64,000 nucleotides of DNA from Gnetum montanum (GCA_015680685.1 MNCI01000217.1:66670-130669); one strand, 5' to 3'. Positions 4,807 through 40,110 are shown, numbered from the stretch's first letter. Program-made: numbers and translations. The notes: generated from the sequence alone by a model not told the origin.

Positions 4807-5711
4807 TGATGAAGTTTCAAATGGTCGACGCGTTTACTAGGTCATGTATACGGGACCCCGTATATACGGCCGTGTCAACGTGGCCTTGTTGATGCATCCT
4901 TCCATGCGTCGACATGGCCCCGTTTATGCGGCACCTATTTCAGCCTATAAATAAGTGGGCTCCCGTCACACTTATTTACCTTTTTGTTAGTTGTAGCGAA
5001 GCTCTTGCAGTTTTTTCCATGAGAGTTAGAATATTTTCCAAGTGGCCACAGTAGGTGTAAGAAAGGTGTCCGGCTCTTTATTCGAGCGCTAATGTACCTA
5101 AGCCCATTGGCGTGAACAGCAATAAAGACAAGCTTTTCAAGCATTCCTTGTAGCAATTGGACTTAGCCATTTCTATGCATTTATAGTTTAATATTTATAT
5201 GCTTTAATCATTCATTGAATTATGTTATTATTATTTTAATCACTCTTGCTCTCTTATAGTTCATCGAAATCATCAGTATGACCATCTCAAACGTGAAACC
5301 CAACACTTGGCAACCCAGCGACGCTTAATGTCTGGTAGCCTAGTAGTGGTTAGGGGATGCTTAAGACGTGCACCGAAGATGGGATCGGATACTTATGCTA
5401 GGAAGAGTTAGGACATAGATTAGGATAATTATAGCTTACATAATATTGCATTCCTTACTTTCCATTCTAAGAATCAGATGTTAGAAGATAAAGTAAAAAG
5501 CCATAAAAACCAGTTGCCTCAATCTCACTTAACCATCGCAATCAGAACATCACAAGTGAGGTTGAGAGGACAACAAACGTTCTAACAAAGGGTTTTGCTA
5601 GTTAAAGGTCCGGTGTATGTTAAGTGCTCACTGTCTACAAAATTCGACCGAGTCACTTGTGAACACCCGTGATTTGCATGGTTGGGCATAGGGGTACCTA
5701 GCCGCTAATCA
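4807..5711 (+). repeat. 5' LTR of element 2
   Basis: TGATGAAG...GCCGCTAATCA; direct repeat of 17032-17916; TATAAATA near 4946. Confidence 0.97.
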
Positions 5712-5712
5712 T

Positions 5713-5730
5713 TGGTGCCATTACCAGGGA
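5713..5730 (+). promoter_or_regulatory. primer-binding site (tRNA-Asp type), element 2
   Basis: TGGTGCCATTACCAGGGA immediately after the LTR. Confidence 0.9.
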
Positions 5731-5875
5731 CTATTAGTCTTACATGCACCATTTAACCTTAGCAAAATTATCATTCACGTCATTGGAACGGACCTAGGAT
5801 AGAAAAATTTACGCACGTTAGGCAGACTTAGTAACAAGTAAGGTACACCGAATAGTGGATTATTTAACATCCAAC

Positions 5876-8417
5876 ATGTCTTCTTCTCACAAGCGAGATG
5901 AATCCAACTCACTAGTGTCCCAAGAATGTCAGGTGGTCTACATGCATCCTAATGAATATGTTCTTGACTTCACTTTCATCCTACATGAGGATGAACATCA
6001 ACGATGATGGGACATGGAAGGCAACATCATACTACCACCTGACTGATCGGCTCCTAGAATGCTGTTTCACAATCTTGCCAGAGTAGGCATCCAAGACCAT
6101 GGTGTGGAGTACATCAGGGAGGACCATGACTACTGGGACTATCGTCCCATTGAGGTCCAATAGGCATGAAACCAGCAGTAGGTAGAATGATATGAACACA
6201 TGAAGGGGAAATAGTTCAATAACCCCTTATTCTTACAAGGGCTGCAGGACGATGGGGAACCTATCTTTCATGATTCCCATTCGACTAAACTTCCTCTGGG
6301 GCATTAGATCATCCAGTCCATTATCTAGAACAAACCACCAAGTGACTGAGATCCCCAAGGGGATGGAGGATCACGTAGGAGAAGCCATGGCTCAAGCAAG
6401 GATGGGTAGGAAGATCGAGGCCGCCATCAGAGCAAAGGGGGAGATCAACACCAGTGTGGTGGCGACTCTTCTCCTTCTTCTCCATCCTCTCACTCCCCTC
6501 TACCTTCACCTAGTTTAGACTCTGATCATAACTGTGGTAGAAAGGGGTAAGGTGATGGTGGTCATAAGGATCGAAGGGACAAACATGAGGAAGTGCATGA
6601 CTAATCACACAAGGCTCACTGTCATGAAAGGAGGGGTAGCCGAAATCGTCACAGACATCATGGTCCTTAGCAGAACTATGACTTGAATGAGCCATTGCTG
6701 GCTACTCGAAGCATGCTCCATATCATCGAGGTAGTTCAGATACCCAGCAGGCACTTGAAAGATAGCTGGATCAAATGCATTGACATGAACAATATCCCCA
6801 GGTTTGAAGGAGGGTACAATTGTGATTCGCAAACTCACCTGTAGGCATTCCATGATGCTTGCACCCTACAGGAATATTGATAATGATTGGAAAAAGCTTA
6901 AGCTATTCCCTCGCACCCTCATTAAGAAAGCAGAAAGCTGGTACTAGTCTTTGGAACTGGAATCAATCAGAAGATGAAGTACGATGCTTGAGATTTTCAA
7001 TGATAAGTATCAAACCTACTCCAGGGTGGTGAATCTGAGACATCAAATCCAAAGCTGGAAGCAAGGGAATCATGAACCCTTGGATGCAACCATGAGTAGG
7101 TACCATTCATTGTTACATCGATGCCATGGTCATGGCTACTCTCAACGGGCACAACTTTGCCATATCATTAATGGGCTTTACTTTGAAACTCAAAAGACCC
7201 TTAGTGTGTACGCCCAGGGACAATTATCATAACTAAGGGCCCATCAACTATAGCGCCTGATTGAGCAAGTGGCCAAAGAAGAGGGGGAACTTAGAAAGAA
7301 GGAGAGCACAGAAGAGTTTAATCGAGATCCATGCATCAGAAAGATGGAGGTCCAATTTTGTGAAGAAGAGGAATCACCACTAGATGCAGCGGTGAACTAA
7401 AAAACCTTGCCCCTACAGAAATTTGCCTCTGAAATATTGAAAAAGGTTGACAAGATGTGGGACTCTCTGGATGAAAGATTTCAAAGTGTTCTAAAAATTA
7501 TAGAGGAGTCCAGGGAGCAAGGTAATGATCATGATCAGCGTAGGAAGAAGGAAGCTAAACGTGCCCATCATAAGGGTAAGGGCAAAGTTGCTGTAGTAGA
7601 ACAGGTTGCAAACTTTGATACAGAGGAAGACGATAAATGTGGCATATGCCAATATGAACATCCTAAGGGGTGTTGTCCTTTGGTGTCACATCTTCAAGAG
7701 TCTAACATGTATGCATTGAATCCTCTTTTGGCGAAGAGGCAAACACCCTGAAGGTTTCCTTAACCACAAGGCAACCTAATACAGTTCCACCAGCAGCAAG
7801 GATATTATCCAAGTGGAGCGCCACTGCAACCTTATGAACACTTCCAATAGTGGAAGCATCCACAAGTGTGGGGGATGCCACCTCCAAGGTAGCAATACCC
7901 TTACAGATAGCCAGATCCCTCTGGGTACTATGTTCAGCAACTAGTCTCTCCACGGGACTCTTCTAGTTACGCAACCTTTCAGAGTTACTACCACCCCCCG
8001 AAATATTTTCAACCACAATCTCCATCACCCAGGGGGGAAAGCCCACATCTCTACTATCCTCCATCACATTCTGCTGCTGTTCCTTCTCCACAACACCCGA
8101 CTCAGCTACCACTTGCTCCACCCATGGAGGGGGAAATCCCACCACAGCCACAACAACGTAACACTATGAGGGCTGTCAACCTACAACCAACTCCTCAGCT
8201 GAGTGGACTAAAAGAAAAGCCACAGAAATGTCCCTTCTTCCAACCTAATAACTTAAGCATACCCTCACACACACCTGTGGCTGGTTCCTCTGAACCTCAA
8301 ACCTCCTCCACCATTCCACCCTTCAAGCAGCCTTCGAACCAAATGCCCTCCAAGGTACAAATGGTCATGCTCACACACGCAATGATCGACTGGATAAAGG
8401 TAGGCCATCTTCCCTGA
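5876..8417 (+). pseudogene. gag: gag (stops and frameshifts)
   Basis: ATGTCTTCTTCT start; KLKLFPRTL..KAESWY..L...SI..W..MLEIFNDKY retrotrans_gag-like core; CGICQYEHPKGCCP Cys/His motif; P/Q-rich C-terminus. Confidence 0.88.
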
Positions 8418-13933: not shown

Positions 13934-16788
13934 ATGGAACCAAAACCAAGGCATCCAATGGACGAAGGACCATCACAACCTAGGGACAAGCATCCACGAA
14001 TAGGAAGGGGATGAGGCATGCAACAACCAGAGCACATGGAGGGCTCTCATGCAACTGACCCCCTCCGTGAAGAACCTAATGTGGAATTTGTCCATCAGAT
14101 TCCCAAAGAGGTGATTCCCAGTAGGCAATTGGAAGGGGATGAAACTCCTGGGATAGTGCCACGACTTGAGGTCACCCTGACTCAAGCATGTCTTGATGCT
14201 ATCAAGCTATGAGAAGTGCAACAAATGGTCCTACAAGAGTTAAAATTTGCACCATTTCTAGAAAATGCACTAGAAGACGTGAGGCTTTAGTTGCAAAATT
14301 CTCCTATGTGGCCAATCATCACAACCAGTGGTGAATCTTACTTAGGAGAGACCTATCTCTTCTGGACAAATCGGCAACCAAGGTCCAAAGTAAGAATTAA
14401 GGACATCTATGTCTCTTACTTTGTGGAAGAAATCACATAAGCTTTGGGGTTGCCAGAGATCGGACCAGATGTGACGGAGATTCCCAAACAAGCAGACCCT
14501 GAGGTGAAAGGGGAGTGGATTAGGCGGTGCTATGGGGTAGATCGCAAGGAGTTCAACACTCTAATCACCACGGAAAGGGTGTATTCAAAAATTGTATCTT
14601 ACCACTTAAACCCAACGGTGAGACCCAGCAAAATCATGGCCTTCTCTACTCGTGCATGTGCCGCCTTAAGTGGAAAATTTCTAATGAGTCTTCCATAATT
14701 GTTATTCTTGGAAATTGAAAATAGGTTCACCGAAAGCAAACGTGGAAGACGAGCTCTCCCCTTCCCCTACCTAATCATAAAGTTATGCAAATGGGCAGGG
14801 ATAGCACGATATACTAATGATACACTCCGGCATGCCCCGATTGCCTCATGGAGGGAAATGATGAAGGATAGGACTCTTACCACTACACACACCAAGGAGG
14901 AGCATAAACCACCTTCACCACCTACACAAACAATGAGGTCGGGTTTGCAAACTATTGCAGAACACATCCACGAAATTCGACAATTGCTCTTGAGCCAGCA
15001 AGAGCAATTTAGAAGGGCCAGTGGAGGAGAAGACCCTTCGATCTATCACCCTACAATGAGCCACATGGAGCAAGTGGCTTGATCAGTCAGTTTGCTAGAA
15101 AGAGCAAGGTCGATGTTCTCCGCTGCTCGAATGCAAGTACCAACAAGAACAGATCCTAGCATTCGAGAGGTAACGGTATCAACTCAACAGCTATTCCCTG
15201 TAATTTTAGGGAATGACACTACCTTCTTGGTATGCCTAGAAGATGGCAAAGGGGCGACAGTCCTAGTAATGCAGCACCAAGGATAGGAGATTGCAGCCGA
15301 AGTGGTTGCTGATACGATTGCTACAACTCTCAATGCACCAGTGGCACCTGTACCAGACGTACATGGACTTCTAGGTGTATAGACATCCACCAGAACTTCA
15401 CGTAGCAAGATTGATGCAGCACAACATGAAGAACTGTTGGACCAACTGGTGGGAACTGGGCAACTGCTTCTGGATGTCTTTGACCTTCCAGATAACATCA
15501 CTGCAACCCAGTCGGAGCTGCTCTCAACAAGGGGTAAGAGCCTTATCTTGGAAGGGCAACTTGAAGTTGCTCAAGCTAACTGTCAAAGCTTGGTGACAGA
15601 AGTTGCTCAATTAAGAGCCCAACTTGCCGATCCAGCTCTTCTCAACCATGAGCTCACCCAAGATGAAGCTTTTCAATAACTTCATATCAAACTACAGATA
15701 GTTGAGGATGAGTGAGAGTTGACGATCTTTGATAAGTCCTTGGCAGACACTCATGCACATCATTTAAACAAGGACTTGATAGAGGTTCGCTAGGAGAATG
15801 TCAGGTTGATTGCGAAGGTCCATCACCTGCGTAATGTTGGTGCTGAAAACGAGCACATGAAAAATTTTATTTACCAATAGCAGGAAGAGCTAGCCAGTGT
15901 GAATGCCGATGTGAGAAGGTTGGCCGTTGAGAATCAAAATTTGTCCATGGAGGAGGTTTGAACCTTGTGACAAAAATCTGCCATGGAAATCGTTGCTTGG
16001 AAGAATGAGGCCCTAAAATTTAAAAATGTCAACAATCATTACAGGGACCAAGTGGGATTGCAAAAGGAAGTGAATGAGAAATAGATTCAATTTGCAAAGG
16101 TGAAGATGAACCAAGCGCTCCAATAGCTCCAAGAAGTAGGTGAGGTATGGCAACCTATCTTTGATGGGTTGAATGCCTACAATCAAGCTGAAATCTGCCT
16201 CAAGGAACTACAAATTGAGGAAATGACAGAGTATATGGAGCTTGCCAACCTTCACTATGCAAACCTGGCTATGCTCATAGCCGGGAGATCGTGATTTGAA
16301 TTGGAAAAGCAAGTGGTTGCCTCGTATTCTTTATACGAGGGCGAGTTCTAGGCACACAAGGCAACAAAACAAAAATTGAAGATAGCAAATGTGGAACTTG
16401 AGGTTCTCTGTATGAGTTTTGAAGGACAACGCGTGGTCGTGGAGAATCTAGCCCATCGAATGAATGACTACCAGTAGCTGCAAACATCAATTTGAGCATT
16501 CGACATCGAATAGAAATAGTTCATAGCTTGGTTTGTCAACTTGAAAGAACTTTTCCCTATACTACCATGCCTTTGGGAGGTTCTCTCCTAGCACACATCG
16601 GTGAAGCCGCCTGGATAGTGAACGATCCCAGAAGTAAAGAGAAAAAGATGAGGGCCCTCTTGGAGGCTTTCCGGTTGCCTCCAGAAGTCGCAGCTGCTGC
16701 AGGGAAGCCATCATTTGTGCCACCACTGCCACATGGGCCGAAGGCTGGTGTAGGTTTGCCGAAACCACCGCCACCAGGGACGGTGTGA
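13934..16788 (+). pseudogene. Athila env-like/extra ORF (~950 aa ancestral): putative plant transposon (Transposase_32-like) domain, long coiled coil, Pro-rich tail
   Basis: ORF pieces 14018, 14444, 14699, 15092, 15437 share one frame with ATG 13934, separated only by TAG/TGA/TAA; motif ALPFPYLIIKLCKWAGI; heptad-rich 15440-16480; frameshift(s) before 16492-16788. Confidence 0.8.
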
Positions 16789-25739: not shown

Positions 25740-26729
25740 GAAAGAAAATCAAAGCTAAAGCTGAGGAATTACCAAAATGCTAATACTTAGAAATTTATTT
25801 CATGATTTCCAAAATTAAGATGGGCCCAAGATGCTCTTGCTTTCTGTCTACAGTACCAATTGTTATATCAAGGATCCTTGATCCTTGTTGATAAATCTTT
25901 ATGCCAAATTACTCCAAATCTTTATGAGTATTTACAATCCCATTTGGAAATAACTCAACTGTCATTTAGGCTTGAAAGTGCAAGGATGGGTGGAGAGATC
26001 CACCAAAACATGGATTCAACAATCCAAGATCTCAAGAAAAATATCAGATTAATGAAGCATTTAAAAATGGTGAAAGAGTTTTGGAAAGAAATCATATTTC
26101 AACCACAAATGAAACAAGGCTGCAACTATACATCTACCTTCTTCAATTTTCAAAGCCCTCTTAAATGATTCTTTTTCTTCTAGCCATTATGTTGGTTTTT
26201 TCCCCATTGTTGTATCCTTACAATCTTTTACATTCTCTCCTACTATTATTATTAGTAGTAGTTACCTCTATGCTTGTTGTAAATGTGCCTTTTGCTATTA
26301 TAGTTGCTCATTAGTAGTAATAGTCGTTGCAATCCTTCTTTCTCCTCTTCGTTTCTTTACACTTCCCTCCCAATTCATTCTTTCCATTTTTTTTAAATTT
26401 CGCCTACCTTTTTCATTTAGTCTATTTTTAGTTTCTTTAATTTAAGTAACTTTCTATTGTAGCTATGTTTTCTTTTTAGTAATGCAAGTAACTTTCTATG
26501 GTAGCTATGCTTTCTTTTTAGTTTTTCTAATGTAAGTAACTTTTTATGGCAGCTATGTTTTCTTTACTAATGAGTCATTGTTGTTGCTCATTAGTAGTAG
26601 TAGTAGTTGCAATCATTCTTTCTCCTGTTCATTTCTTTACTTTTCTCTCCCATTTCTTTCTCTCCATTATTTTTTTATTTTGCCTACCTTTTCATTTAGT
26701 CTATTTTTAGTTTCTTTAATGTAAGTAAC
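25740..26729 (-). repeat. dispersed repeat with decayed L1 post-RT sequence; split by LINE A, resumes at 32617-32880; second copy ~42800-43750
   Basis: collinear similarity with 42800-43750; internal short duplications 26240-26730. Confidence 0.7.
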
Positions 26730-26999
26730 ATTTTTTTGGAAAAACGATTGAGAGATTTTATTTCGAAAAAAAAGAAAGAAATGTACAATGTACACAAAGG
26801 TCATTGACCCAAGTCTGCAAAACCCAACCATGTGACATAGTGGTCACCTGCAACTTTTATTGTGAGCTCCCATGAGCCTACAGAGCGTAGCCTCCTCCCA
26901 CTACCCAAAAACCCTCAACCCAAGGTCCCAACCCATTATCAAAAGGGTAGGGGCGATTGAAAATAACAATGACACACCCTTGAAGGGCCAAGAGCCCCC

Positions 27000-29900
27000 T
27001 CCCCCCTCGATGAGGCTGTGCACTACTTGACCTCATTAGGCTGTAAAGCACTGCATCCCGTAGTCTCTGCTAAATGTGACCTGGACTCCAGACCCTCAAT
27101 CGCAATCGAGGTCTCTGATGCGTCTGTGCCATCCGCAGCCTATTGCATCATTGTCCCTAGCCGAAGTCCCAATTGCTAATTCTTTGCTCTAAGCTATGCC
27201 AGTCCCGTCTAGTGCTCTGTGATCATCACTTCCATCCACCTGAGGTCTTGCAAGCATGAGGCGTTCACTTCCCTTTAGGCCTCCTATCATCTCATGTCCT
27301 CCCACTAGAGCTGCCACTGTGCATGCTCCTCTAACTACGCCTACTTGGCAGCTAGTCGGCATTCGTCAAGCAATGTTGATCTCTAGCACTCCATTCTTGT
27401 GCTGGCTCCATGGCTGTGGACAGACCCAGAGCTTTGGTGTCTTCCAACCCAGGACCTCAGTGGTTATGTGCCTGCGCCCTGTGGTGCTGTTGCTGTTGGT
27501 ACACAAGAGTTGGCATCAAGCGAGCAATCAGCACTCCCCCACGCCAATGCTCAAGGATCACCCCTGGGTGTTGCCTTGGCTGTTGCCTCCGAAGGGATTC
27601 CTAGAAAAATTGGGGTAAGTTAATTGGGGAACCTTGTCAAATATGCTTGAGAAAGGTGAAATGCACCCCCATCAGTTTGTGGGGATACCTAGACTATACA
27701 ACGTACTGCTCCACCATGAGTGCCACATCCCTCCAAACCCTTTGCAATTCAGACTTCCAGATGTGTCCACTAGTAGTCCTGGGAAGAACTCTATTGTGTC
27801 TGTCTGAGCCCTTGCAACCAGTGCCATGATCTCCCTCGCTGCCTCCACTCCTAGCACAACAACTAGCACCTACACCATGACCTCTATTCTTTTGCCCTTG
27901 TACTACATAGCATCTCCCACCCAACTGTCGTAGAATTGCTATGCGAACAGGTTCGGTTCACCTTCCAAGCGTTTGAGCATCTCCACCCATCCCATCCTTT
28001 CAATGAACGACCATAACTCGGGTAGACAGGAAAATTCTATCCATGATAGCTCAAACAACAGTCATTGTTCCATTGTAGTGGTTGTAGGAGGTGGTTGTCC
28101 CTAAAAAATTAGAGAATTCCTTCGTTTCCACAAGACCCACAATGTGGCAAGTTGTACAGAGTCCCTATGGAACCCCACGGTGGGAGAGAGATTTGTAGCC
28201 TGCCACACTTCCTAAGAGAACTGACATCCATAAATAAGATGGTGCAACGTTTTAGGTGTTGCTTGGCAGCGTGGACAGCTATCGTCCAACCGTATCCCCC
28301 TCTCTCTCAACGTGGCCCTCACTAGTAGCACCTTGTGTTTAAGCAGCCAACCGAATGCCTTGAACTTCTCAGGAAGATGAGCTTTCCATATCTCTGCCCA
28401 CCCCTCTTCTTGCGGATATCGGACTTTAACCAACTCCATCGAGTGCTGCCCCAATAATCTGAGCTGCTCCACCACACGAGCATGGCAGCAAAAAATTTTC
28501 CATAGTTGGGAGCAATCCAACTGAACCTCCCATCTCTAGTATTTTTGTCGTAGAATTTGCACCCATAGTGCCACTCCTACAGTTTGCCCCATGTATCTGT
28601 TCAGTAGATAGTGTGTGCCCAAAGCCATCTCATGTCCAAACCCCAAAATGCCAATGCCCCCCGCTAGTTTGGGCTGCGTTGTTACCATCCACAACACTAA
28701 GTGCATCTTTCTGCCACCTTTGCCACTTGACCACACAAACTCCCGCATAATGCTATCAATGTGCACCATTGTGGCCAGCGGCGTTGCCATTGACACTGTG
28801 AATTGGGCAATTGCCATCAGAACCATCGTAGCCAACACCATCTTTCCTTTCTGGGACAGAAAACGACCTATCCAAAGCATGGTCCACTGCTGGACCCGCT
28901 CCACCAATCCTTGCCAAGTCTTCTGCCATTTCCAATAAAAAATAGGCATTCCCAAGTATGTGTCATGGGCTTGGCCCTGAAGTTGGCCCTGAAGAATGCC
29001 TAACATTTGTATAATTCTGGCCTGCACCATTCCCTTTGTGTGGGTAAAATAAATGGTGGACTTCCCTTTATTGACTTCAATGCCTACCTCACGCTGCATC
29101 CTCTCCATCGCCCATAATAGGGCCACAGTCTGCAGCACCGCAACCCTAGAGAAAACCATTGTATCATTCATGTAGTGGGCTGCTAGACTGTGCACCCTAG
29201 CAACATGAAGTCGCTAAACACCTTCAACAAGGCAATAGCCTTTAAACAAATCCATGATAATGATAAACAGGAGCGGTGATAATGGATCACGTTGTTGCAA
29301 TCCATGCCCTATTCCAACGAACTCACATAATCTCCCGTTGATGTCAAGAGAGTAGCAGCTAGCCACTTTGTTGCATTTGAATGTAGACATGGACGAACTT
29401 GGCATCAAACCCCTTCTCCATCAACACTACCCTGAGTGTTGCCCAAGTCACAGTATTGTAGGCCTTGGTAATGTCCAGTTTGATGCACATTCTTGGAAAC
29501 CTGGCCACCCTCACCGAGTGTAGAATCTCTTGCAAGAGCAACACTTGGTCCTAGAGATAACGTCCCTTAATGAACTCCACCTGATGCTCCCCAACCAGCT
29601 TCCCCATTAGCAGCACTAAGCACTTGACCAACATCTTGGAAAAAATTCACAATAGAGTGTTGTAGACCCTGATGGGTCGGAAATGTCCCGATGATGATGG
29701 GTTAGGGACCTTGGGCAACAACACCACCATTGAGTAGTTTATTTCCCTCCTTACCTACTGCCAACTACGCATACTGTTGTATGCATCCAGTAGGTTGGGC
29801 CCTAGGAAATCTTCATGCTCCCTAAAAAATTCTATCGACCATCCATTTGGTCTTGGAGCCTTGTTAGACTACATGGATTTCATTGCCCGCCACAACTCCT

Positions 29901-31179
29901 CCCGCTAGAAAGGACGCAATAAGTGTGAGTTATTAGCACTTGTAATGACCTTTGTGACTCGCAGAGAGATAGGTTCTGTAGCACGCCATCTCTAGATGTC
30001 TCCCTGAAACTTCTGCAAGGCATTTAGCGCCCTCCTGTGGCTTTGTGGGCCTCCCCCAGCAATGCCCTTGAGTAGATCCTAGATTTTATTCTATGGGCCC
30101 TATTGTGTTTGGCCATGGCAAAGAAGAAACATGCATGCTTGTCCCCTTCCTACAGCCAAGTCACCCTTGACCACTATCACTAGTAGCTCTCTTCCTCCTT
30201 GTCTAGCTCCTAGAGTTCTCTAAGTAGCTTCTATTCTTCAATGTCCTGGCCAGCCCCTGTTTCCTACAACCTTTGTATCTCCAACAATTCCTTCTGCACG
30301 TGCTGTCTGTACCCACGAAAGCTATACTTGTCATCCAATGTTTTGGCCTTAATGCCATTTTTAAGGCCCTCAAACTATCCCGCAAGAACTGTCAAGGCTC
30401 TTGCGCCCTAGTGTAAGTTTTCTAGATTTCAGCCACCATTGGTTTTTGCCAAGCCTTGTGCAACCAAGACTGCTCAAATCTTAAGGGTTGGGGCTCTTGA
30501 CTCTCCTCCAATTGAAATTGGCATAGTATGGTTTGATGATCTGATGTTTGTTGCTCCTTGTCCTTTGCCTTGATATCATACTCCAACATGAGGTGCTCAC
30601 TCACCCATACGCGATCGATCCAAGACTGGATGCAATTAGGGCCCCTTTGGTGATTGCTTCAGGTGAATTTACACCCTAGGATCTCCAAGTCAATGAGCTC
30701 ATACTGACAAAGAAACTCAATGCACGCCTCGGCCCTTGGAGGACCAGTGCAATCGTTGCTAGATTTCTCCTAGCAACAGAGCCTCTGGTTGAAATCTCCT
30801 AGCAACATCCATCTGCAGTATTGGGGATGACCCTAGCCACATGTTGAAGGTCTTGGACTTGGGCCTCCCAATTTTGTGCCCCATAAAAATTTGTGATCCA
30901 AAGATTTGCCGGCGACACACAGATAGTTTAACTTCAATCAGAATCATCCACGAAATTGATTGAGATTCTGGCCAGAATGGCTAGACCTCCTGCTTGGCCC
31001 TTGTTGGGCACAATGTGGGTTGTCCATCCCTCCCATATTAGCAACTTCCGTTCAGTCCTTTGCACCTTTGTTTCTTGTAAGCAGACCACATAGCAACCTG
31101 CCTCCCTAACCATCACTCGTAGGGTATTTCTTTTGTATGGGGTACCCTAGCCATGATAGTTCTAGGTGAGGATCTTCAT
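27000..31179 (-). pseudogene. LINE A ORF2: APE endonuclease, RT, zf-RVT, extra C-terminal domain and coiled coil
   Basis: MKILT*NYHG start, VVCLQETK, SDHQTI (APE); KLDITKAYNTVTW, GLQQRDPLSPLLF, YMNDT (RT); KFKAFGWLL..CPRC..TLHHLIYGC (zf-RVT); LWVLWKRRNSLIF; frame continues. 3' end approximate. Confidence 0.9.
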
Positions 31180-32400
31180 GGAGATGTAGACACCTGTCGG
31201 TGATACACCTCCCGCAGTGTCCACTGCACCCCCAAATCTAGATCCAGCTACATGAATTTCTTACACATTGTTGTTCTATCGGACCGCCCAATCTTGCTGT
31301 TTGGTCAGAGCACCACCACTCTAAGTTGACCTTTTGCCTACCTGGGTTGAATGTCCTTCATTTTTGGTTTAGCAGAGCCTCATCCCATAGTGATCCATTC
31401 CCCCAACGGGGGCAACTCCAATGCTGAGGTTGGCTGCTGCCCATGGAGCCAACAACGTGCAAGGTGAGCCAAGGACCTCCCCTAGCCCCCCACCCTTAGA
31501 CAACCCCTTTGATTTGCCATATGCTGGCAACGGGTCTTACGCACCCTCCCCACCCTAGGCATCTGGTCCTCCTGCATCTATTGCTGTCCATCTATCATTG
31601 TTTGTTAGTGTTTGTATTGTGGTCCCCCATCTCCCATCGAAGATGATCCCTACTTCCATATTTGGCCCTTCTTCCCCATGATAGTCCAGCCTTGAGCAGC
31701 CTTCGTTGGTCCTCGACAGCGTTCTAATTCTGGTTGCCTTTTCCTAGACCTTACATCCCTAGTGCTCCTTGCATCGTGTTGCCAGGTTTTCAAATTTTAC
31801 GTAGATCTTTTCTTCTCCGTCGGCGATGTCCAGCACAATCTCCTCAACTCTATCCTCTGACTGCAGCGACCTCCAAATGTAGAAACAGGCGTACCCCATC
31901 TAGTCCATGGATTTTGTAAATGCGTCAAACTTGATAAATTCTCTAAACAACCCTACCAAAGACTTCAGAAACCTCGGTTCCCAGTATTCCAATGGCAAAG
32001 CGAACAGCCAGATCTAGATCGATGCACAATCAAATAGGCATTTATCTCAATGTGCTTCAGGTCACCATGGAGCCAGGGCTAGCCCCCCGAGCTCCATAGA
32101 ACCACGGACCCCCGCCAGCAACACCTTGTCCCTTTCCTCCATCGTCGGAAAATTGAATAGTAGTCGATCATCCACCAAAGTCAGGACACAGACATCCTCC
32201 AACCCCCAAGTCATGTGAACCCATTTTCAGATGACATCCATATGTAGCCTTACTCCTTCAGAAACAAATTTCCTAGTAGACTCCACTCTAGTTCGTGCAT
32301 GGCCTCCTTGGGCAGACGCCCAACCCTAACACCCATGACCGCTTCGTCTTGTGAACAGGCATCAAACTTGGTGCCATTACCCACCTGTGAGGCAACTCAA
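31180..32400 (-). pseudogene. LINE A ORF1 (DUF4283-like)
   Basis: WVHMTWGLEDV..LVDDRLLFNF..ERDKVLL..IWLFALPLEYWEPRFLKSL; aligns with LINE B ORF1; boundaries approximate. Confidence 0.75.
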
Positions 32401-33239
32401 ACCCTAGTCTCTCACGCTACTCCCTCCTAGGCATTCACCTGGCTGTGCGCGGGCCCATCCACAGTCTTGCCAGTACCACCACCTGCTACAGCCATCCCTA
32501 TTGCTGCTCCTGCTGTGGCTCCCACTCCCATTGCCATCGCCACTCTTGCTTCCATCATCACCACCGCTCCCACTTCCATCGCCACTCCCATTCCCATCCT
32601 TCCTCAATGGCTTATCTAATGTAAGTAACTTTCTATGGCAACTATCTTTTCTTTTTATCTTACAAATGAATCCAAAATTAATTCTTTGGTTCACACATTC
32701 CAAAAGCCACAAAATAAAAGTTAACCCTTCCAGCTAAAAGGACTTTGCTTCAATTCCTCCAAAAGATGATTTCTGGTTATTTTTAAAGCAAGAAAACACA
32801 CTCCAGCCCTTATTCTAGCAAAATTATCTATTAAAATAAAACCATAGAAGATGATGAGGGTTTCATGAGCAAGATTTAAAGAAAACACAAAATCAAAGTA
32901 TCAAATTAAGGAAAAACCTTCTCCTTCAAACACTTTGTAGTACAACCAATGTTGCATCATGTTATGAGCATCGGAAGAACATTGTGTGACCTTTCTACAA
33001 CTATTGAGAGGGGATTCTGGTTTTGACTTAATAAGTTTTATTCCTCCAAAAGATCATTAAAGAAAGTGACGTAATTGTCCTTGATTCATAGGTGATGTTC
33101 TTCTTCTTTTTAATTTTATTTATACATACCACAAAATTGTAAAATGGTAATAGATAATACCTATTATCATATTTATTTTTTGTATGTGTAAAGCTAATTT
33201 CTTTCTGATTGAACTTGAGAAACTCAACTCATGCAAAAT

Positions 33240-33800
33240 GCATTGATGTGACCGTCTATTCATGTTACACTTACATGTTTTAGAAGCAAAATTGCTTCCT
33301 CTTAAAGTTGAAGCCCTTTGTCAATTTATTGCTTATACTTAGAAGTTAAGTCACATGGAGGTAGTTAATTATGCTAAGGAGATAATGAATCCTACACAAG
33401 AAAATGTATAGTTGCATGAAGGAAAATCATGGCTTTAGTCGTGAAATATTGTAATAGAGAATTTTCCTTTAAATAAAAGGCTCTTTCAAAAAATTATAAA
33501 AGAAAAAGTCTTGGTTAAAGTTTGGTTGAGCATGTTAGGGAAAAAACATTTTTATTTATATTTTGTAAGAGGAGGTTTATTATCTAGTACTCAAAAGTAT
33601 ATATTCTCAACTATTCCTATTCATTTAAAGAATCAAATTGCTATAGCAAGAATGATCTCTCATCATCTTCTTATTGAGATAGGTCGTTGGATCAATTTAC
33701 GAAGAGAAGCGTATTTGTAGATTGTGTAAATAAAACATAGAAGATGAAGAACATATATATATTTTTATTTTTCCCATCTTTGGCTGATATTTGATTGAAT
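33240..33800 (+). mobile_element. 3' end of an older RTEX/CR1-like LINE ORF2, apparently interrupted by LINE B
   Basis: IAIARMISHHLLIEIGRW...EDEEH C-terminal motif. Confidence 0.6.
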
Positions 33801-34105
33801 TATACTATATTTTTGAAGAGAAGGTCAGGCAAAATTTGTATTAAACAAGAAAAATAGAAAAAAGAAATGTACAAAGCAAAAAGAAGGCCATCCCATATGG
33901 CGGGAGCAAGATGCCTAGTTCGCCACCCATAAACATAAAATCCACCCCAAAGCCGAAACCCCTTGACAACAAAGGAAACACCTGCCAACAATAAAGAACC
34001 TATCTCCCCATATACCGGAAATGTTAAGGGAATAACAGAGGCACAACGCTAGCCAAACCCAAAATGGGGCATGGGCCAACAACAACCCTATTTCCCATCC
34101 AAACA

Positions 34106-37100
34106 TCATATCACTGTGCCCCCAACCAAAATGTTAGAGTCTCTTGGACAACCGCACACAATGGCATCAAGCTCGTTCTTGAGTGTGAATGTTATCGAGC
34201 ATCCTCCTATGCTGTTTAGTATCAACAAATGCTGTGGCATGGTGAAATTCTTTGGTAGCCTCTGTGGTCCCTTTCTCATCCGAATGTAGCTTGGTAGTAG
34301 TTCGTTGAATGTGCTGATAGAGCACCCCCCATGACATTTGACCATAGATATCCATAACAACATACGGGCATTTGTCCTCCCAGAGCCACAACCTAACCCT
34401 ACTTTTATGAGCATGATCAATTTGATGTTGATGCTCCACCACGTCCTCTCTGTCCGACTCATGCTCAGCCCACTTAGATTGCTCATGTTTAGTGTTTTGT
34501 TGCTCCACCTGCTGCATTTCTACTTTGATTTGTTCTCGTAGCAAATTTTCCAATGTAGCCCTTAACACTGACTCCTTAAGATCCCACTCACACCACATCT
34601 ATTTTTCCCTATTCACCATCGCATGCTTCACCGCATTGAGTTGTTGAGTAAACTTCGGCTCATGGGCTTCCCACTTGGCTTCTGAAGTGATCCGCTTGGC
34701 CCATTTGGCCTCCTCAATTGCCTCTTCAATCAGCTTTGGCTGCTGCCATATGCATGCTCTCCTTGGCTAGCTCAGTTTCCATCTCCCTAAGCATGCTTTG
34801 CGCTTCCAAGCATTGAATTTGCAATGGAGCAGCCTCCAGCTCCTCCCTAACAACCTGCACTTCCTTCGGCACTTGCCCACCATACCCCTTATGTGGCCCC
34901 TCATCCTCCATGGTAGACGAAACCCTCCTGTGAACCACAACTTCCCTCCCCCTACTATAGACAAACTTCAGCGTTGGCCATAGTTGCAATAATCAACCTT
35001 GATTTCCAAAGGGCAATAATCAGCCTTGAATGCCACTTGTGTTGTTGCCGCTGTAAGGTGTTCATAAAAAACCTAGGTAGGTTGACATGTTGGCGACATT
35101 TCAAACATTTCAGAAAACCAAAGTGGACCCCTTGTAACTTTGACACGTTTCTAGACTGGATGAAATAACAATCCACCAAATCCACCGCTTCTTGCCAAAA
35201 CCTCGGTAGCATTGATCTTGGGATTTGCCTGCTTGATGTTTTTGGGATGGCCCACATGAAAAAGACCTATGCATCATGAAATCCCCTGCCATGAGGAAGA
35301 ATGACTTCCCCTGATAATGGAACCCAGGCAATCAGCCAATGATGCCTTCTTGAGAATGATCTAGACTCTTTTGAAGTTTGTGGTGTCTCCTTGCCAATTC
35401 CTAAAAAAAGCGTCATTAGGCAGCTTTGGGTCCCCCCATAACAGTTGTAGCACCTCATACCAACCGACTTTACAAATGAGCTCTCGTAACTCGATGTTTT
35501 GCCAAAACTTTTTGTAATCAGGCTCAAAGGTAGGAGTTTGCCCCATCACAGTCATAGCCTCATGCCAGAGCCTATGCCCTTGAACCACCAACTGTACTAG
35601 ACCCTTGAACCGCCAACTGTACTAGAGCAGGCAACTGCTTGTCATAGAAAATCAACGCATTGTGAGCCCTCAAAGTCACCCAATAGATTGCAACACTCAT
35701 TAAACCACTAGTGAGATCCAGTAGAAACGAAGCAAGTGATTGCACTAATGCCTACCACACTTGAATTTGATGTGTGCATTCATAAATGAAATGTTGAAGT
35801 GTTTCTAGGGCCTGCATGCAACACGGACACGTGTCCACCATGTGCATTCTGCGACTTTGCAAAACTGCATGCATGGGTAGCGCATTATGATTCATCAACC
35901 AAAAAAAAGATCTTAATTTTTTTGGGTAAGTAGCCTTTCCACAGGTTCTGCCACCCACTCATTGTAGGGAATTTACATCTTAATGAGAGCCTGGGGTGAC
36001 GCTGCCATCATTCCAAGCGTAGTCACACTCCTAACATGCTCACAGACTGCTCTCCAAATGAGAGAGTCTCTATGGTTTGTTGTCCACTATGTATACTTGG
36101 ACGTGATGATTTGTATCCATTGAGCTTGATTGGTACCCCGATGGGTAATACGATTGGCTAGTATCTGATAACCCATCAAAACTAAATCTTGAAACTTCAT
36201 TACCCCCAATCCCCCTGCCTCTATGGGCTGAGCAATAGTGTCTCAATTGACTAGGTGCAACTTCGACCCCCCTTTCCCACCTGACTAGATGAAGTTTCGG
36301 ACAATTTGGTCAACTTTATTCACCACCGTTGTAGGGGGGGCGGGTGGGGCGGCCCGGGGATGCACAATCATCGACAAAATTGAATTAGCCAGCAACATTC
36401 AGCTTTTTTGTGTTAAGAATCTCGTTGTCCAATGCTCCACCCATTGTTGTAGCTGACGAATAAGGGTGCTCCAAGTATCTTTCCAATGCCACTAAAAAAC
36501 TTGAAGCCCCAAATAACTATCTTGATTAGTTCCTACCATCATGCCCAACACCTGCAGAATGCACCCCTTAATTGTATTGGACACATATGACATATATATA
36601 GTGCACTTAGCTTTATTGACCTCCAGCCCAATTTCATTTGCCATTTGCTCAATAGCCCTATTGAGAGCCTATGCTTGTAGCATAGTCGCATGTGAGAAGA
36701 TCATTGTGTCGTCGACATAATGTTCCATCACACAGTTAATCCCAACAATGTTAAGACCATGGACCCCTTCAACCTGGCAATATGCCGATAGCGTATCCAT
36801 AGCAAGAATGAATAGGTATAGGGAAAGAGGATCAGCTTGTCGCAATCCTCTCCCCTGGGAAGCAAACCCCCACAACCTATCCCCAATATCAAAGGAATAA
36901 GCTCTAGAAGCCTGAATTTGAATACATAGAGCAATGAAACCAATATCAAAACCCTTCTGTGCCATAATGTTAGCTAGGGCATCCTAGCTAATAGCATCAT
37001 ACACCTTCTCAATGTCCAACTATATGCACATTCCAAGATACCTAAATCTTTGTATTGAATGCATCACCTCCTGGAGTAGTAGGATTTGATCCTGAATGAA

Positions 37101-38648
37101 ACGTGCCCTAATGAAATCAGTCTGGTTCCTTCCAACTATCTATAGCATGAGTGGCACAAGCCTTCTCACAACATCTTTGTAAAAATCCGGATCAAAGTAT
37201 TGCACACCTTGATAGGAAAAAATTGTGATGGGTTAGATGGATTAGCCACCTTAGGCAGAAGCACAATTCTCAAGTAATTAATTTCATGTCAAACTTCTTG
37301 TCTGTGCAACATCTAGTTAAACGCCTCCAAAAGATTAGCCTTTAGCACATCAACAAATTCTTTGAAGAATTCCACCGAGGGCCTAGTTCGACCACATGGT
37401 CCCCAACGCCTCCTCCAATTCTTGCCAAGGGAAAGGCTCCAACAATATTTTGTTTTCCACCTCTCCCAACACTGACCTCATCGACATAGAATCCACCTAG
37501 TATTACTACATGATATGGGCCACATCCCGAGGAGCAATCAAGCACTTCCCATTATGCTAGAGCCTCAGCTCCTTCACTGCCCAATTGGCTTTTGCCATTG
37601 CAAAGAAGAACTTTGTGTTTTTATCCCCCTCACGCAACCAATGATCCTAAGCGCATTGTTTCCAATAAACCTTCGCTTTAGCATCAAGGTCCTAAAGCTC
37701 CTATAGTACACATTTCTCTTCCGTCGTAACCTCTTCACCTCACCTGCCTAACTTGCAACATAGTCAAATGAGACAACAGCTCCATTTGCCCCTTCCTAAA
37801 CAAGAACTTCTCCTCAGCCTTTAGAGACCGAATGGCCTACTTTAGACAAGAAATGCCCTTCTTCAAGAAGTCTCTAGGTTTGTATGTTCATCATAATCTA
37901 CCCAAGTTTGTTTCACCAGCGAGGGTTTAGTCAACCAAGATCACTCAAAATGAAAGGGGAAAGTTCTCAGGCTAGCTATGCTCCCCACCTGACAACATAG
38001 ATATTAGTGGTCAAATGCAAGTCTCTCTTTTCCTTCCAACCACACCCCTGACTCCATCAAAATGTGAGTGCTAGCCTAGATATGATCGATCTGAGAGAGG
38101 ACCAATGCCGTCCCCCCACATCGATTGCTCCAAGTGTACTAGCATCCTATAAGCTCTACATCAACCAAATCATGCTCTTGTAAGAATTCCAGACACTATG
38201 TGCTTCCTGGTGGGTTTGCCATATCACCACTGGTCTTCTCCCAAGCAAATAGGTGCTAGTTGAAATCACCAATCACAATCCGTTGGTTAATGTTGATGAG
38301 AGTGGCAATTCGCAGCAACTCCTGCAATCGTTCTTGCTAGAGCTAGGATCCATAAAAGTTAGTGAGCCATGTTCTTTCATCTAGAAGCAGAACCATAATA
38401 CTCCAGTTAGCCGAAACAAACTGCATGAACGGTCATTTTGCCAACATGGCCAAACCCCCTGCTTTTCCAGAATTGGGCACAAAATGAGTTTGCCATCCTA
38501 CCCACTACGATAGCTCAATCTCCGTAGCCTACAACTTTGTCTCTTGCACACAAACACTGTCACATCCCTCCCACCGCACTAGATCTTGTAGGGTATTATG
38601 TTTATAGGGGGTACCTTGCCCCTTGCAATTCCACGAAAGAATCTTCAT
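34106..38648 (-). pseudogene. LINE B ORF2: APE, RT, zf-RVT, extra C-terminal domain and coiled coil
   Basis: MKILSWNCKGQG; GLRQADPLSLYLFILAMD, YVDDT; KLRSFFWLM..CPCC..ETLQHFIYEC; YWVTLRAHNALIF; extension ORFs 35361-35591, 34955-35257, 34726-34989, 34167-34598. Confidence 0.9.
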
Positions 38649-38649
38649 G

Positions 38650-39770
38650 GCTTATTGGGTGCACATTTCTTGTACACCTCCTTCAAGGTAGGCTATACTC
38701 CCAAATCAATCTCTATTGGCATGATTTTTCCACGAGCCATGGGCGAAAGCGGGCATCCAATTTGGCTTAGCTCTTGAAAGACAGGAAAACCTCCTCTCAA
38801 CCCTATGCACTTCTAGGATTTCATCCATCCTAGGCAATGAGGATCCCCACACAACTCCCACCCGGTCTCCAAGCAGGGGCACTCTCACCTCCTTCACCTT
38901 TTGAGGCGAGGGGAGAACATCCTCTCTCCTAACCCCTTCTAGACTTCGAGCCTGCCTCTTTGACGTCAACCTCACACCTGACTCATTGGACTGCTTAGGC
39001 ACCGCACCATGCTCTTGCCTCTCAAAATGCGTAGGTTGAACAAGCACTCTCATTGCCGTAGAGTCCCAAAACCTTCAGCTAGAGGCCTCTGTTTCACAAG
39101 GCAGCCCCTCCTCCCCACTTCCATCCACTGTTAGGGCTACAAGGGGGGTGCTCTTTCATGCAACTCCTACAAGTCGCCTCCAAATGGTTCCCTTTGCCGC
39201 ACACCGTACACCCAGTGTCCGAAACCCCTTCATGCACCCCCTACGCATCCACCCCCCAGATTCTCATATTCCACTCTCAAGGTCTCCTTTCCTGCTGGCG
39301 TCTCCAGAACAATCTCCTACACCCGATCCTCCAACCCCAATGGTCTCCAAACACAGAAACAGGCATACCCCATATGTTCCATTGATTTCGTATACTTGTC
39401 AAATTTCACAAATTCTCTGAACATCCCTGCCAGCGACCTTAGAAACTTTGGTGTCCACCATTCCAAAGGCAAGTCTAGTACCCTAAACCAAATCTGGTGC
39501 TCGGGTGAAAATGTCTGCATCTCAGTGGGCCCCTGGCTGCCAAGGCCAGCCCTTGAGCACCATAAAACGATGGACCCACAAGTAGCACCTTTTCGTTATC
39601 TTCAATAGACTGAAAAATGAATAGGAGCCTGTCATCTACCAAATTGTGCACCTGCAACTTCTCCAACCTCCATGCAGCATCCACCCATCAACGGATAAGG
39701 TCCATCCTGGGGCGGGCCCCCTTAGAAACAAACTTGCCTAGAAGGCTAAGCTGCAATGTGCACAAACCTT
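38650..39770 (-). pseudogene. LINE B ORF1 (DUF4283-like)
   Basis: WVDAAWRLEKLQVHNLVDDRLLFIF..EKVLL; IWFRVLDLPLEWWTPKFLRSLAG..FDKYTKSM. Confidence 0.8.
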
Positions 39771-40110
39771 CTTTCTTTCGGATTGACCCTATCTACTTAG
39801 GACATTACATCAATGATGTTTTCAATTTTCTTCAAAAATATGTTGAGGCTTTTTAATTGTCCAACAAATCCTTTGTGATTTCCTGGACGTAATAAAAATC
39901 TCCAGTTTCTAGTTTCCACTTTCATCAATTATAAATTCGCAATACCAAAAAGAAATATTAAATAAGCAGCCCAAAAATAAAGCCTTTATTTAATAATTTT
40001 AGTTTACATCATAGTCAAAACCACATCCATGTTTAAAACATAGTTACAAAAAGAAAACAAGAAATGAAAACATTCAAAAACACATCACAAAATAGCCTAA
40101 CACAACCTGT

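Follow-up and report, generated by a model that had tools for sequence, protein, structure and literature searches.

A dead L1-type LINE of Gnetum montanum with a conserved domain past the usual ORF2 end, probably once part of an extended ORF2 protein

Plant long interspersed nuclear elements (LINEs) of the L1 type include lineages in which an RNase H has been added after the reverse transcriptase (RT) (Smyshlyaev et al. 2013, as cited in PMC5203782), and the plant open reading frame 2 proteins (ORF2p) presented in PMC5203782 are of only two kinds, RVT_1 and RVT_1 with RVT_3/RNH. Insect R1 LINEs carry a C-terminal superfamily 1 (SF1) helicase domain in ORF2 (PMC4686597), and the 3' additional ORFs (aORFs) of Athila elements, which are long terminal repeat (LTR) retrotransposons, carry the family PF20167 (PMC11728184). 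Here we describe LINE B, an L1-type element on the minus strand of a 64,000-nucleotide stretch of Gnetum montanum DNA (GCA_015680685.1, MNCI01000217.1:66670-130669; this whole stretch is referred to as the window). LINE B was compared with LINE A, its diverged sister element in the window, and with L002, a metagenome contig that carries a distant relative. LINE B is most likely a dead plant L1 copy from an old subclade in which ORF2p ran on for ~460 codons past its usual end. Descriptions of plant L1 elements include a single optional addition to ORF2, RNase H, and a conserved tail of ~460 amino acids would thus add a new architecture.

The region of LINE B from the usual ORF2 end to the 3' end, and the corresponding region of LINE A, are composed as follows:

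35627..35754, minus strand: usual C-terminal tail of a plant L1 ORF2 (..YWVTLRAHNALIFYDKQLPALVQL..), in frame 0, aligning with the tails of LINE A and L002
35577..35626, minus strand: 25-bp tandem duplication in LINE B (Tandem Repeats Finder: period 25, 2.0 copies, 96%)
35322..35560, minus strand: N-terminal part of the extension domain, in frame +1, with a conserved Met, then FEP.. and GW.E.L..L.G.P.L
34958..35321, minus strand: C-terminal part of the extension domain, in frame +2, with W...V.L.D.Y.IQ, KL.G..F.FL, NLP.FF and HSG.I
34400..34957, minus strand: variable charged, helix-prone region of LINE B, with two more frame changes
34170..34399, minus strand: end of the LINE B tail, with a stop codon at 34167-34169
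33800..34166, minus strand: 3' untranslated region of LINE B, with the 14-mer TTGTACATTTCTTT at 33861-33874, then an A-rich end
~28085..27460, minus strand: extension domain of LINE A, followed by a decayed tail down to ~26900

The peptides that a first-pass annotation of this DNA had quoted for LINE B were located in the minus-strand ORFs 35361-35591 and 34955-35257, and their gapless alignment to LINE A was recovered by tblastx as two ungapped blocks. In the first block, B 35552-35370 aligned with A 28079-27897 (36% identity over 61 amino acids), and in the second block, B 35248-34979 aligned with A 27786-27517 (39% over 90 amino acids, 79 bits). No DNA similarity between A and B was detected by blastn in these blocks. 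Smith-Waterman alignment of the two blocks gave z = 14 and 33, and none of 3000 shuffles reached the observed scores, so that the alignment stands against shuffled controls. The other two frames of the same blocks showed an amino acid identity of only 17%–25%. When the tails were compared by tblastx with all other parts of the window, including the Athila aORF, nothing was returned. Pfam assigned no family to the extension domain in any of the stop-free tail pieces of LINE B and L002, and Rfam gave no match over 26-41 kb.

The apparent break between ORF2 and the extension had been ascribed to a 25-bp tandem duplication, and this proved correct for the first break. The two copies (35602-35626 and 35577-35601) differ by 1 base, and the window contains no further occurrence of either. 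The usual ORF2 tail of LINE B, which is also read as ..RAHNALIFYDKQLPALVQL.., occupies frame 0, and the first extension block follows in frame +1; because 25 mod 3 = 1, the duplication explains the shift. The frame account was incomplete in that a second frameshift, near 35322 and between the two extension blocks, had gone unmentioned. In LINE A, the first extension block is in the same frame as the usual ORF2 tail. The duplication is missing from both LINE A and L002 and is therefore private to the B lineage, which leaves intact the proposed fusion of the domain to ORF2; an ancestral repeat would have spoken against it. An orthologous contig from a sister species spans 35286-35784 with 7 differences and 0 gaps, which indicates that the duplication is common to that species as well.

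The 100-amino-acid B block was used as a phmmer query against 1.84 billion representative proteins. One true relative was found, P0002 (86 amino acids), and two further matches were low-complexity false ones. Since only this fragment was matched, ordinary L1 ORF2 proteins lack the tail. P0002 was also found in a word-indexed protein search by a profile of the extension domain, and by no other query; as for all profiles of this domain used here, only three sequences (B, A and L002) stood behind it. P0002 is part of the metagenome contig L002 (13.9 kb, 34% GC; L001 is the identical sequence). The contig harbours a plant-type LINE that has RVT_1 and zf-RVT (Pfam zf-RVT E 1.9e-10). A single frame of L002 runs through zf-RVT, the usual ORF2 tail and the entire conserved domain (~5330-5941); it contains four in-frame stops and is not interrupted by any frameshift. 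The RT of L002 was 29%–40% identical to those of A and B at the amino acid level, and its second extension block was 40% identical to B and 35% to A; this block is as well conserved as RT in the comparisons with L002. The first extension block of L002 was 25% identical to B over 63 amino acids (z 14).

The three-way alignment of B, A and L002 delimits a domain of ~200 amino acids with the motifs FEP.., GW.E.L..L.G, an I..e.iA..L..p..G stretch, W...V.L.D.Y.IQ, KL.G..F.FL, NLP.FF and HSG.I...W. The conserved Met lies within 35530-35545 in LINE B, 28070-28085 in LINE A and L002:5318-5330. The domain is thus homologous in three deeply diverged elements, where it occupies the same place and, allowing for the duplication in LINE B, the ORF2 frame. 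It is probably alpha-helical, as judged from an AlphaFold2 (AF2) model of a 105-amino-acid L002 piece, which showed a weak four-helix arrangement (predicted local distance difference test, pLDDT, 59.6). This model matched only generic helical bundles in the PDB (Foldseek) and with VIA-align wide, with a best Z of 5.4, and a PDB profile search gave nothing meaningful.

We next considered how the extension has diverged between A and B. The identity at codon positions 1/2/3 was 0.59/0.54/0.36 and 0.49/0.67/0.34 in the two extension blocks, and the RT, zf-RVT and endonuclease (EN) blocks showed a like pattern (e.g., 0.47/0.66/0.34 and 0.56/0.66/0.34). Third positions were at random level, and the synonymous divergence (dS) was saturated or undefined; the nonsynonymous divergence (dN) was 0.53-0.63 in the extension and 0.32-0.79 in ORF2. 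Because the codon-position pattern matches that of the RT, zf-RVT and EN blocks, the tail evolved as a constrained protein. It diverged as coding sequence, under a constraint comparable to that seen in the less conserved portions of ORF2, in agreement with the purifying selection on a real domain that the first-pass annotation had put forward.

Related copies are numerous. In each run, ~2000 contigs from three related species fell on LINE B at a likeness of at least 80%, and the depth over the tail was 37-244, compared to 67-300 over RT. The deepest tail bin was 35094-35292, in the second conserved block. The observed/expected CpG ratio was 0.34-0.37, and both this ratio and the GC content were alike in ORF2 and tail. 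Almost all ORF2 blocks of LINE A and LINE B alike contain stops, and stops inside the aligned extension blocks are confined to LINE A; the LINE B tail is broken by the 25-bp duplication, by frameshifts and by stops outside the aligned blocks. No sign of LINE B transcription was seen in an oligo-dT RNA run (X17), where the depth on the tail was at most ~1.6 and the reads were mostly <90% alike.

The exact 14-mer TTGTACATTTCTTT was found at two places in the 64 kb, 33861-33874 and 26775-26788, both on the minus strand. Each lies near the 3' end of one LINE and downstream of the extension, and 0 of 100 shuffles gave at least two matches. A motif common to both LINEs thus follows the tail. This common 3' motif, the many copies and the like CpG and GC values rule out a one-off 3' transduction. 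Together with the domain in L002, they support the view, already proposed in the first-pass annotation, that an old L1 subclade had this tail as an ancestral component. In LINE A, a 13-bp direct repeat, GTTACTTACATTA, at 32617-32629 and 26717-26729 encloses the tail, and the element ends in a short A run; the repeat lies inside a local tandem array and is a candidate target site duplication only. The array round LINE A occupies 26300-26730 and 32617-32660 and is made of units with CCATAGAAAGTTACTTACATTA and a longer ~290-bp repeat. LINE B has an A-rich end, and no clear target site duplication was found.

Past the conserved domain, the tails differ. The stretch that follows is ~560 nt long in A, 785 nt in B and 1900 nt in L002, and the charged region of LINE B showed no similarity to A or L002. 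The stop-free pieces tested (34440-34733) consist of 40%–49% EKRQD residues, with almost no Pro or Gly. For the 143-amino-acid ORF 34170-34598, AF2 predicted one helix at residues 2-45 (pLDDT 56-75). A coiled coil had been proposed at 34170-34900. The stretch is indeed charged, poor in Pro and Gly and helix-prone, yet the Fourier power at a period of 3.5 residues was not above that of shuffles in the correctly framed B segments (p 0.40-0.97; segment 34729-34892 was left out of this test). A true coiled coil is therefore not supported, for want of a heptad signal.

The J-domain is the part of Hsp40 that switches on Hsp70, and viruses carry modules of this kind (DnaJ, PF00226), e.g., in the polyomavirus T antigens. 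In L002, positions 7651-7800 matched Pfam DnaJ at E 9.9e-5 and 22.8 bits (gathering score 27.8), over helices III-IV only, and of the 13 PDB matches of this tail piece 11 were J-domains, the best being DNAJC5 (E 7e-4). The surrounding region, 7530-7870, contains an N-terminal half that reads CWYDVLGV...YYLDK, and then a stop at the place of HPD. It is thus probable from these matches that the L002 tail ends in a J-domain. The L002 J piece yielded no candidates in the word-indexed protein search. The stretch 34380-34190 of LINE B (..KLHSDEKG..EATKEF..) resembles a J-domain by eye, but every test of it failed. There was no Pfam DnaJ match and no PDB match, Smith-Waterman comparison with the L002 J-domain did not exceed shuffles (p = 0.34), and the AF2 pLDDT of the tail end was <50. 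A J-domain in LINE B is accordingly not supported. In the ancestral protein, the conserved domain may have continued into the charged region and a J-domain.

The remaining features of the two elements are these:

33800..39771, minus strand, ends approximate: LINE B, dead L1-type non-LTR retrotransposon, collinear with LINE A by tblastx
39245..39735, minus strand: ORF1 remnant of LINE B (DUF4283; two pieces, Pfam E 1e-7 and 0.0019)
35755..38648, minus strand: canonical ORF2 of LINE B with EN, RT and zf-RVT, and with many stops and frameshifts
26730..32616, minus strand: LINE A, diverged sister element (zf-RVT E 5.8e-14, Exo_endo_phos E 4.6e-5)

LINE A and LINE B are collinear through ORF1, EN, RT, zf-RVT and the extension. 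Each is a dead LINE of the typical plant L1 type. They possess an endonuclease of the APE type, RVT_1 followed by zf-RVT, and an ORF1 of the DUF4283 type. The endonuclease is documented by the LINE A piece that matches Exo_endo_phos (E 4.6e-5), to which LINE B is homologous by tblastx. In LINE B, zf-RVT was found at 35958-35755 (E 7.4e-14) and RVT_1 pieces were also matched by Pfam. The DUF4283 match at E 1e-7 corresponds to the piece 39320-39520, and the amino acid identity of the ORF1 remnants of LINE B and LINE A is 56%–61%. ORF2 of LINE B starts at 38648 with MKILSWNCKG. Across the 50 bases of this start (38601-38650), the read depth rises 10- to 30-fold, to 1480-2970, and the DNA of the ORF2 start is evidently kept across many LINE families of these genomes.

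The 5' limit of LINE B was placed at 39771/39772, where a high-copy repeat abuts, and the 3' limit was set by analogy with the end of LINE A past the common 14-mer. Many contigs split from LINE B exactly at 39771/39772, and the adjoining repeat at 39772-39850 has a very high copy number (depth 2700-7800, with RNA reads too). Ahead of its region of homology to LINE B, LINE A has at its 5' end a GGN-rich, microsatellite-like stretch (32404-32712), which on one strand codes for a low-complexity sequence rich in Gly, Ser and Asp. The window also contains an Athila 3' ORF domain with in-frame stops, at 14102-15080. Its Transposase_32 (PF20167) match covers the last 26 residues only, and an 84-amino-acid middle piece had no word-sharing relative in an index of 5.8 billion proteins.

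Several observations weigh against the reading of the tail as part of ORF2p. A, B and L002 are all dead, and no intact frame of ORF2 plus tail was seen. Protein similarity was the criterion by which blocks were picked for the codon test, and this choice biases them in favour of the pattern observed. Past the conserved domain, the frame shifts in both B and L002, and the two shifts differ in direction. The J-domain was found in L002 only, where it is below the Pfam gathering score and its HPD is destroyed, and it is undetectable in B and A. The Met common to B, A and L002 lies ~8 residues before the first tail motif and may represent either an internal start or the initiation codon of an ORF that was once captured. 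Finally, the linker of LINE A has two stops (IF*..MEQ*). The last two points also speak for the tail having been a separate ORF3, made from its own start, by reinitiation or by readthrough, and never fused to ORF2p. We regard this as unlikely, because ORF2 and the domain share a frame in L002, in A and, with the duplication allowed for, in B, and because the linkers of B and L002 have no stop; the stops in the linker of A are among many decay stops of that element. The shared frame and the stop-free linkers favour the fusion.

The tail could also be foreign, acquired independently through 3' transduction or a template switch to an mRNA of the host or of an LTR retrotransposon. In the ESM Atlas, the L002 piece was placed near PF20167 clusters (9 of 30 hits, score 0.90), and the B piece gave nothing; hhalign picked a collinear stretch in the Athila aORF. 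From these leads, the domain could conceivably have originated in a single ancient capture, and its kinship with Transposase_32 and the Athila aORF is a lead only. The kinship tests themselves were not significant. The three-sequence extension HMM scored -3.3 on the Athila aORF of the window (rank 763/1223 among shuffles), the hhalign match, again with a three-sequence profile, had P 0.14 and a probability of 0.4%, and Pfam found no match of Transposase_32 to the B and L002 pieces at E up to 10, where the window's own Athila piece matches PF20167 at E 0.019 only. Moreover, the place and order of the tail are alike in three lineages, its divergence tracks that of ORF2, the element's own conserved 3' motif lies downstream of it, and its base composition and CpG decay are as in ORF2. 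Independent foreign origins are thus very improbable. Chance or low-complexity matching in junk DNA, for which the short length of the blocks is all that can be said, is refuted by the shuffle scores, by the low identity in the other frames and by the match of a third element; its likelihood is practically nil.

Given this weighing, an extended ORF2p remains the best explanation of LINE B, and the following course of events may be proposed. LINE B would be a 5'-shortened copy of a plant L1-type LINE. In the active lineage, the tail would have been made as part of ORF2p, in the order of a ~200-amino-acid conserved domain, a fast-evolving, charged helical stretch of variable length and a short C-terminal module, which in the distant relative L002 is probably a J-domain. 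The tail probably served in the assembly of the ribonucleoprotein (RNP) or in chaperone recruitment. Possible roles are, for the conserved domain, that of a module for interaction or nucleic-acid binding and, for the J-domain, the recruitment of Hsp70. Once inserted, the copy would have decayed neutrally, as suggested by the stops, frameshifts and CpG depletion that are alike in ORF2 and tail. LINE B itself, a dead copy, performs no function.

A search of the accessible literature found no LINE described with a J-domain or with such an ORF2 extension. A new non-LTR architecture would matter especially if the tail truly ends in a J-domain, as it probably does in L002, and would then suggest how a LINE ribonucleoprotein recruits host chaperones. 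The ~200-amino-acid domain, nearly absent from the 1.84 billion representatives, would be an unannotated protein family that genome annotation has missed. That an old plant L1 ORF2p combined a J-domain with an orphan domain distantly kin to the Athila/Transposase_32 accessory protein is doubtful. If true, plant LINEs and LTR retrotransposons would have exchanged an accessory module, and a LINE would hijack Hsp70 directly.

Compared to the polyomavirus T antigens, the likeness lies in a mobile or parasitic element with its own J-domain, as suggested by the match of the L002 tail to helices III-IV. Here, in contrast, the module is seen in a metagenome relative only, below the Pfam cut-off and with HPD lost, and is not demonstrable in B or A. 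With the Athila 3' aORF and PF20167, the extension shares the arrangement of a conserved domain of ~180-200 amino acids followed by a long charged or coiled region. It differs in the type of element, in showing no significant sequence or profile match, and in being probably fused to ORF2, whereas the Athila aORF is a separate ORF after pol. The insect R1 elements (PMC4686597) are a precedent for a LINE ORF2 that gained a large C-terminal domain of foreign origin; they belong to another clade, and their domain is recognizable and has a viral source. The RNase H-bearing plant L1 elements have the same ORF2 with APE endonuclease, RT and zf-RVT, the same DUF4283-type ORF1, and likewise a subclade set by an extra C-terminal module in ORF2. 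RNase H (RVT_3) was not matched in the tail pieces of B and L002 (Pfam, E up to 1-10). In place of RNase H, the module added here is an orphan, probably helical domain with a charged region, joined in L002 by a probable J-domain.

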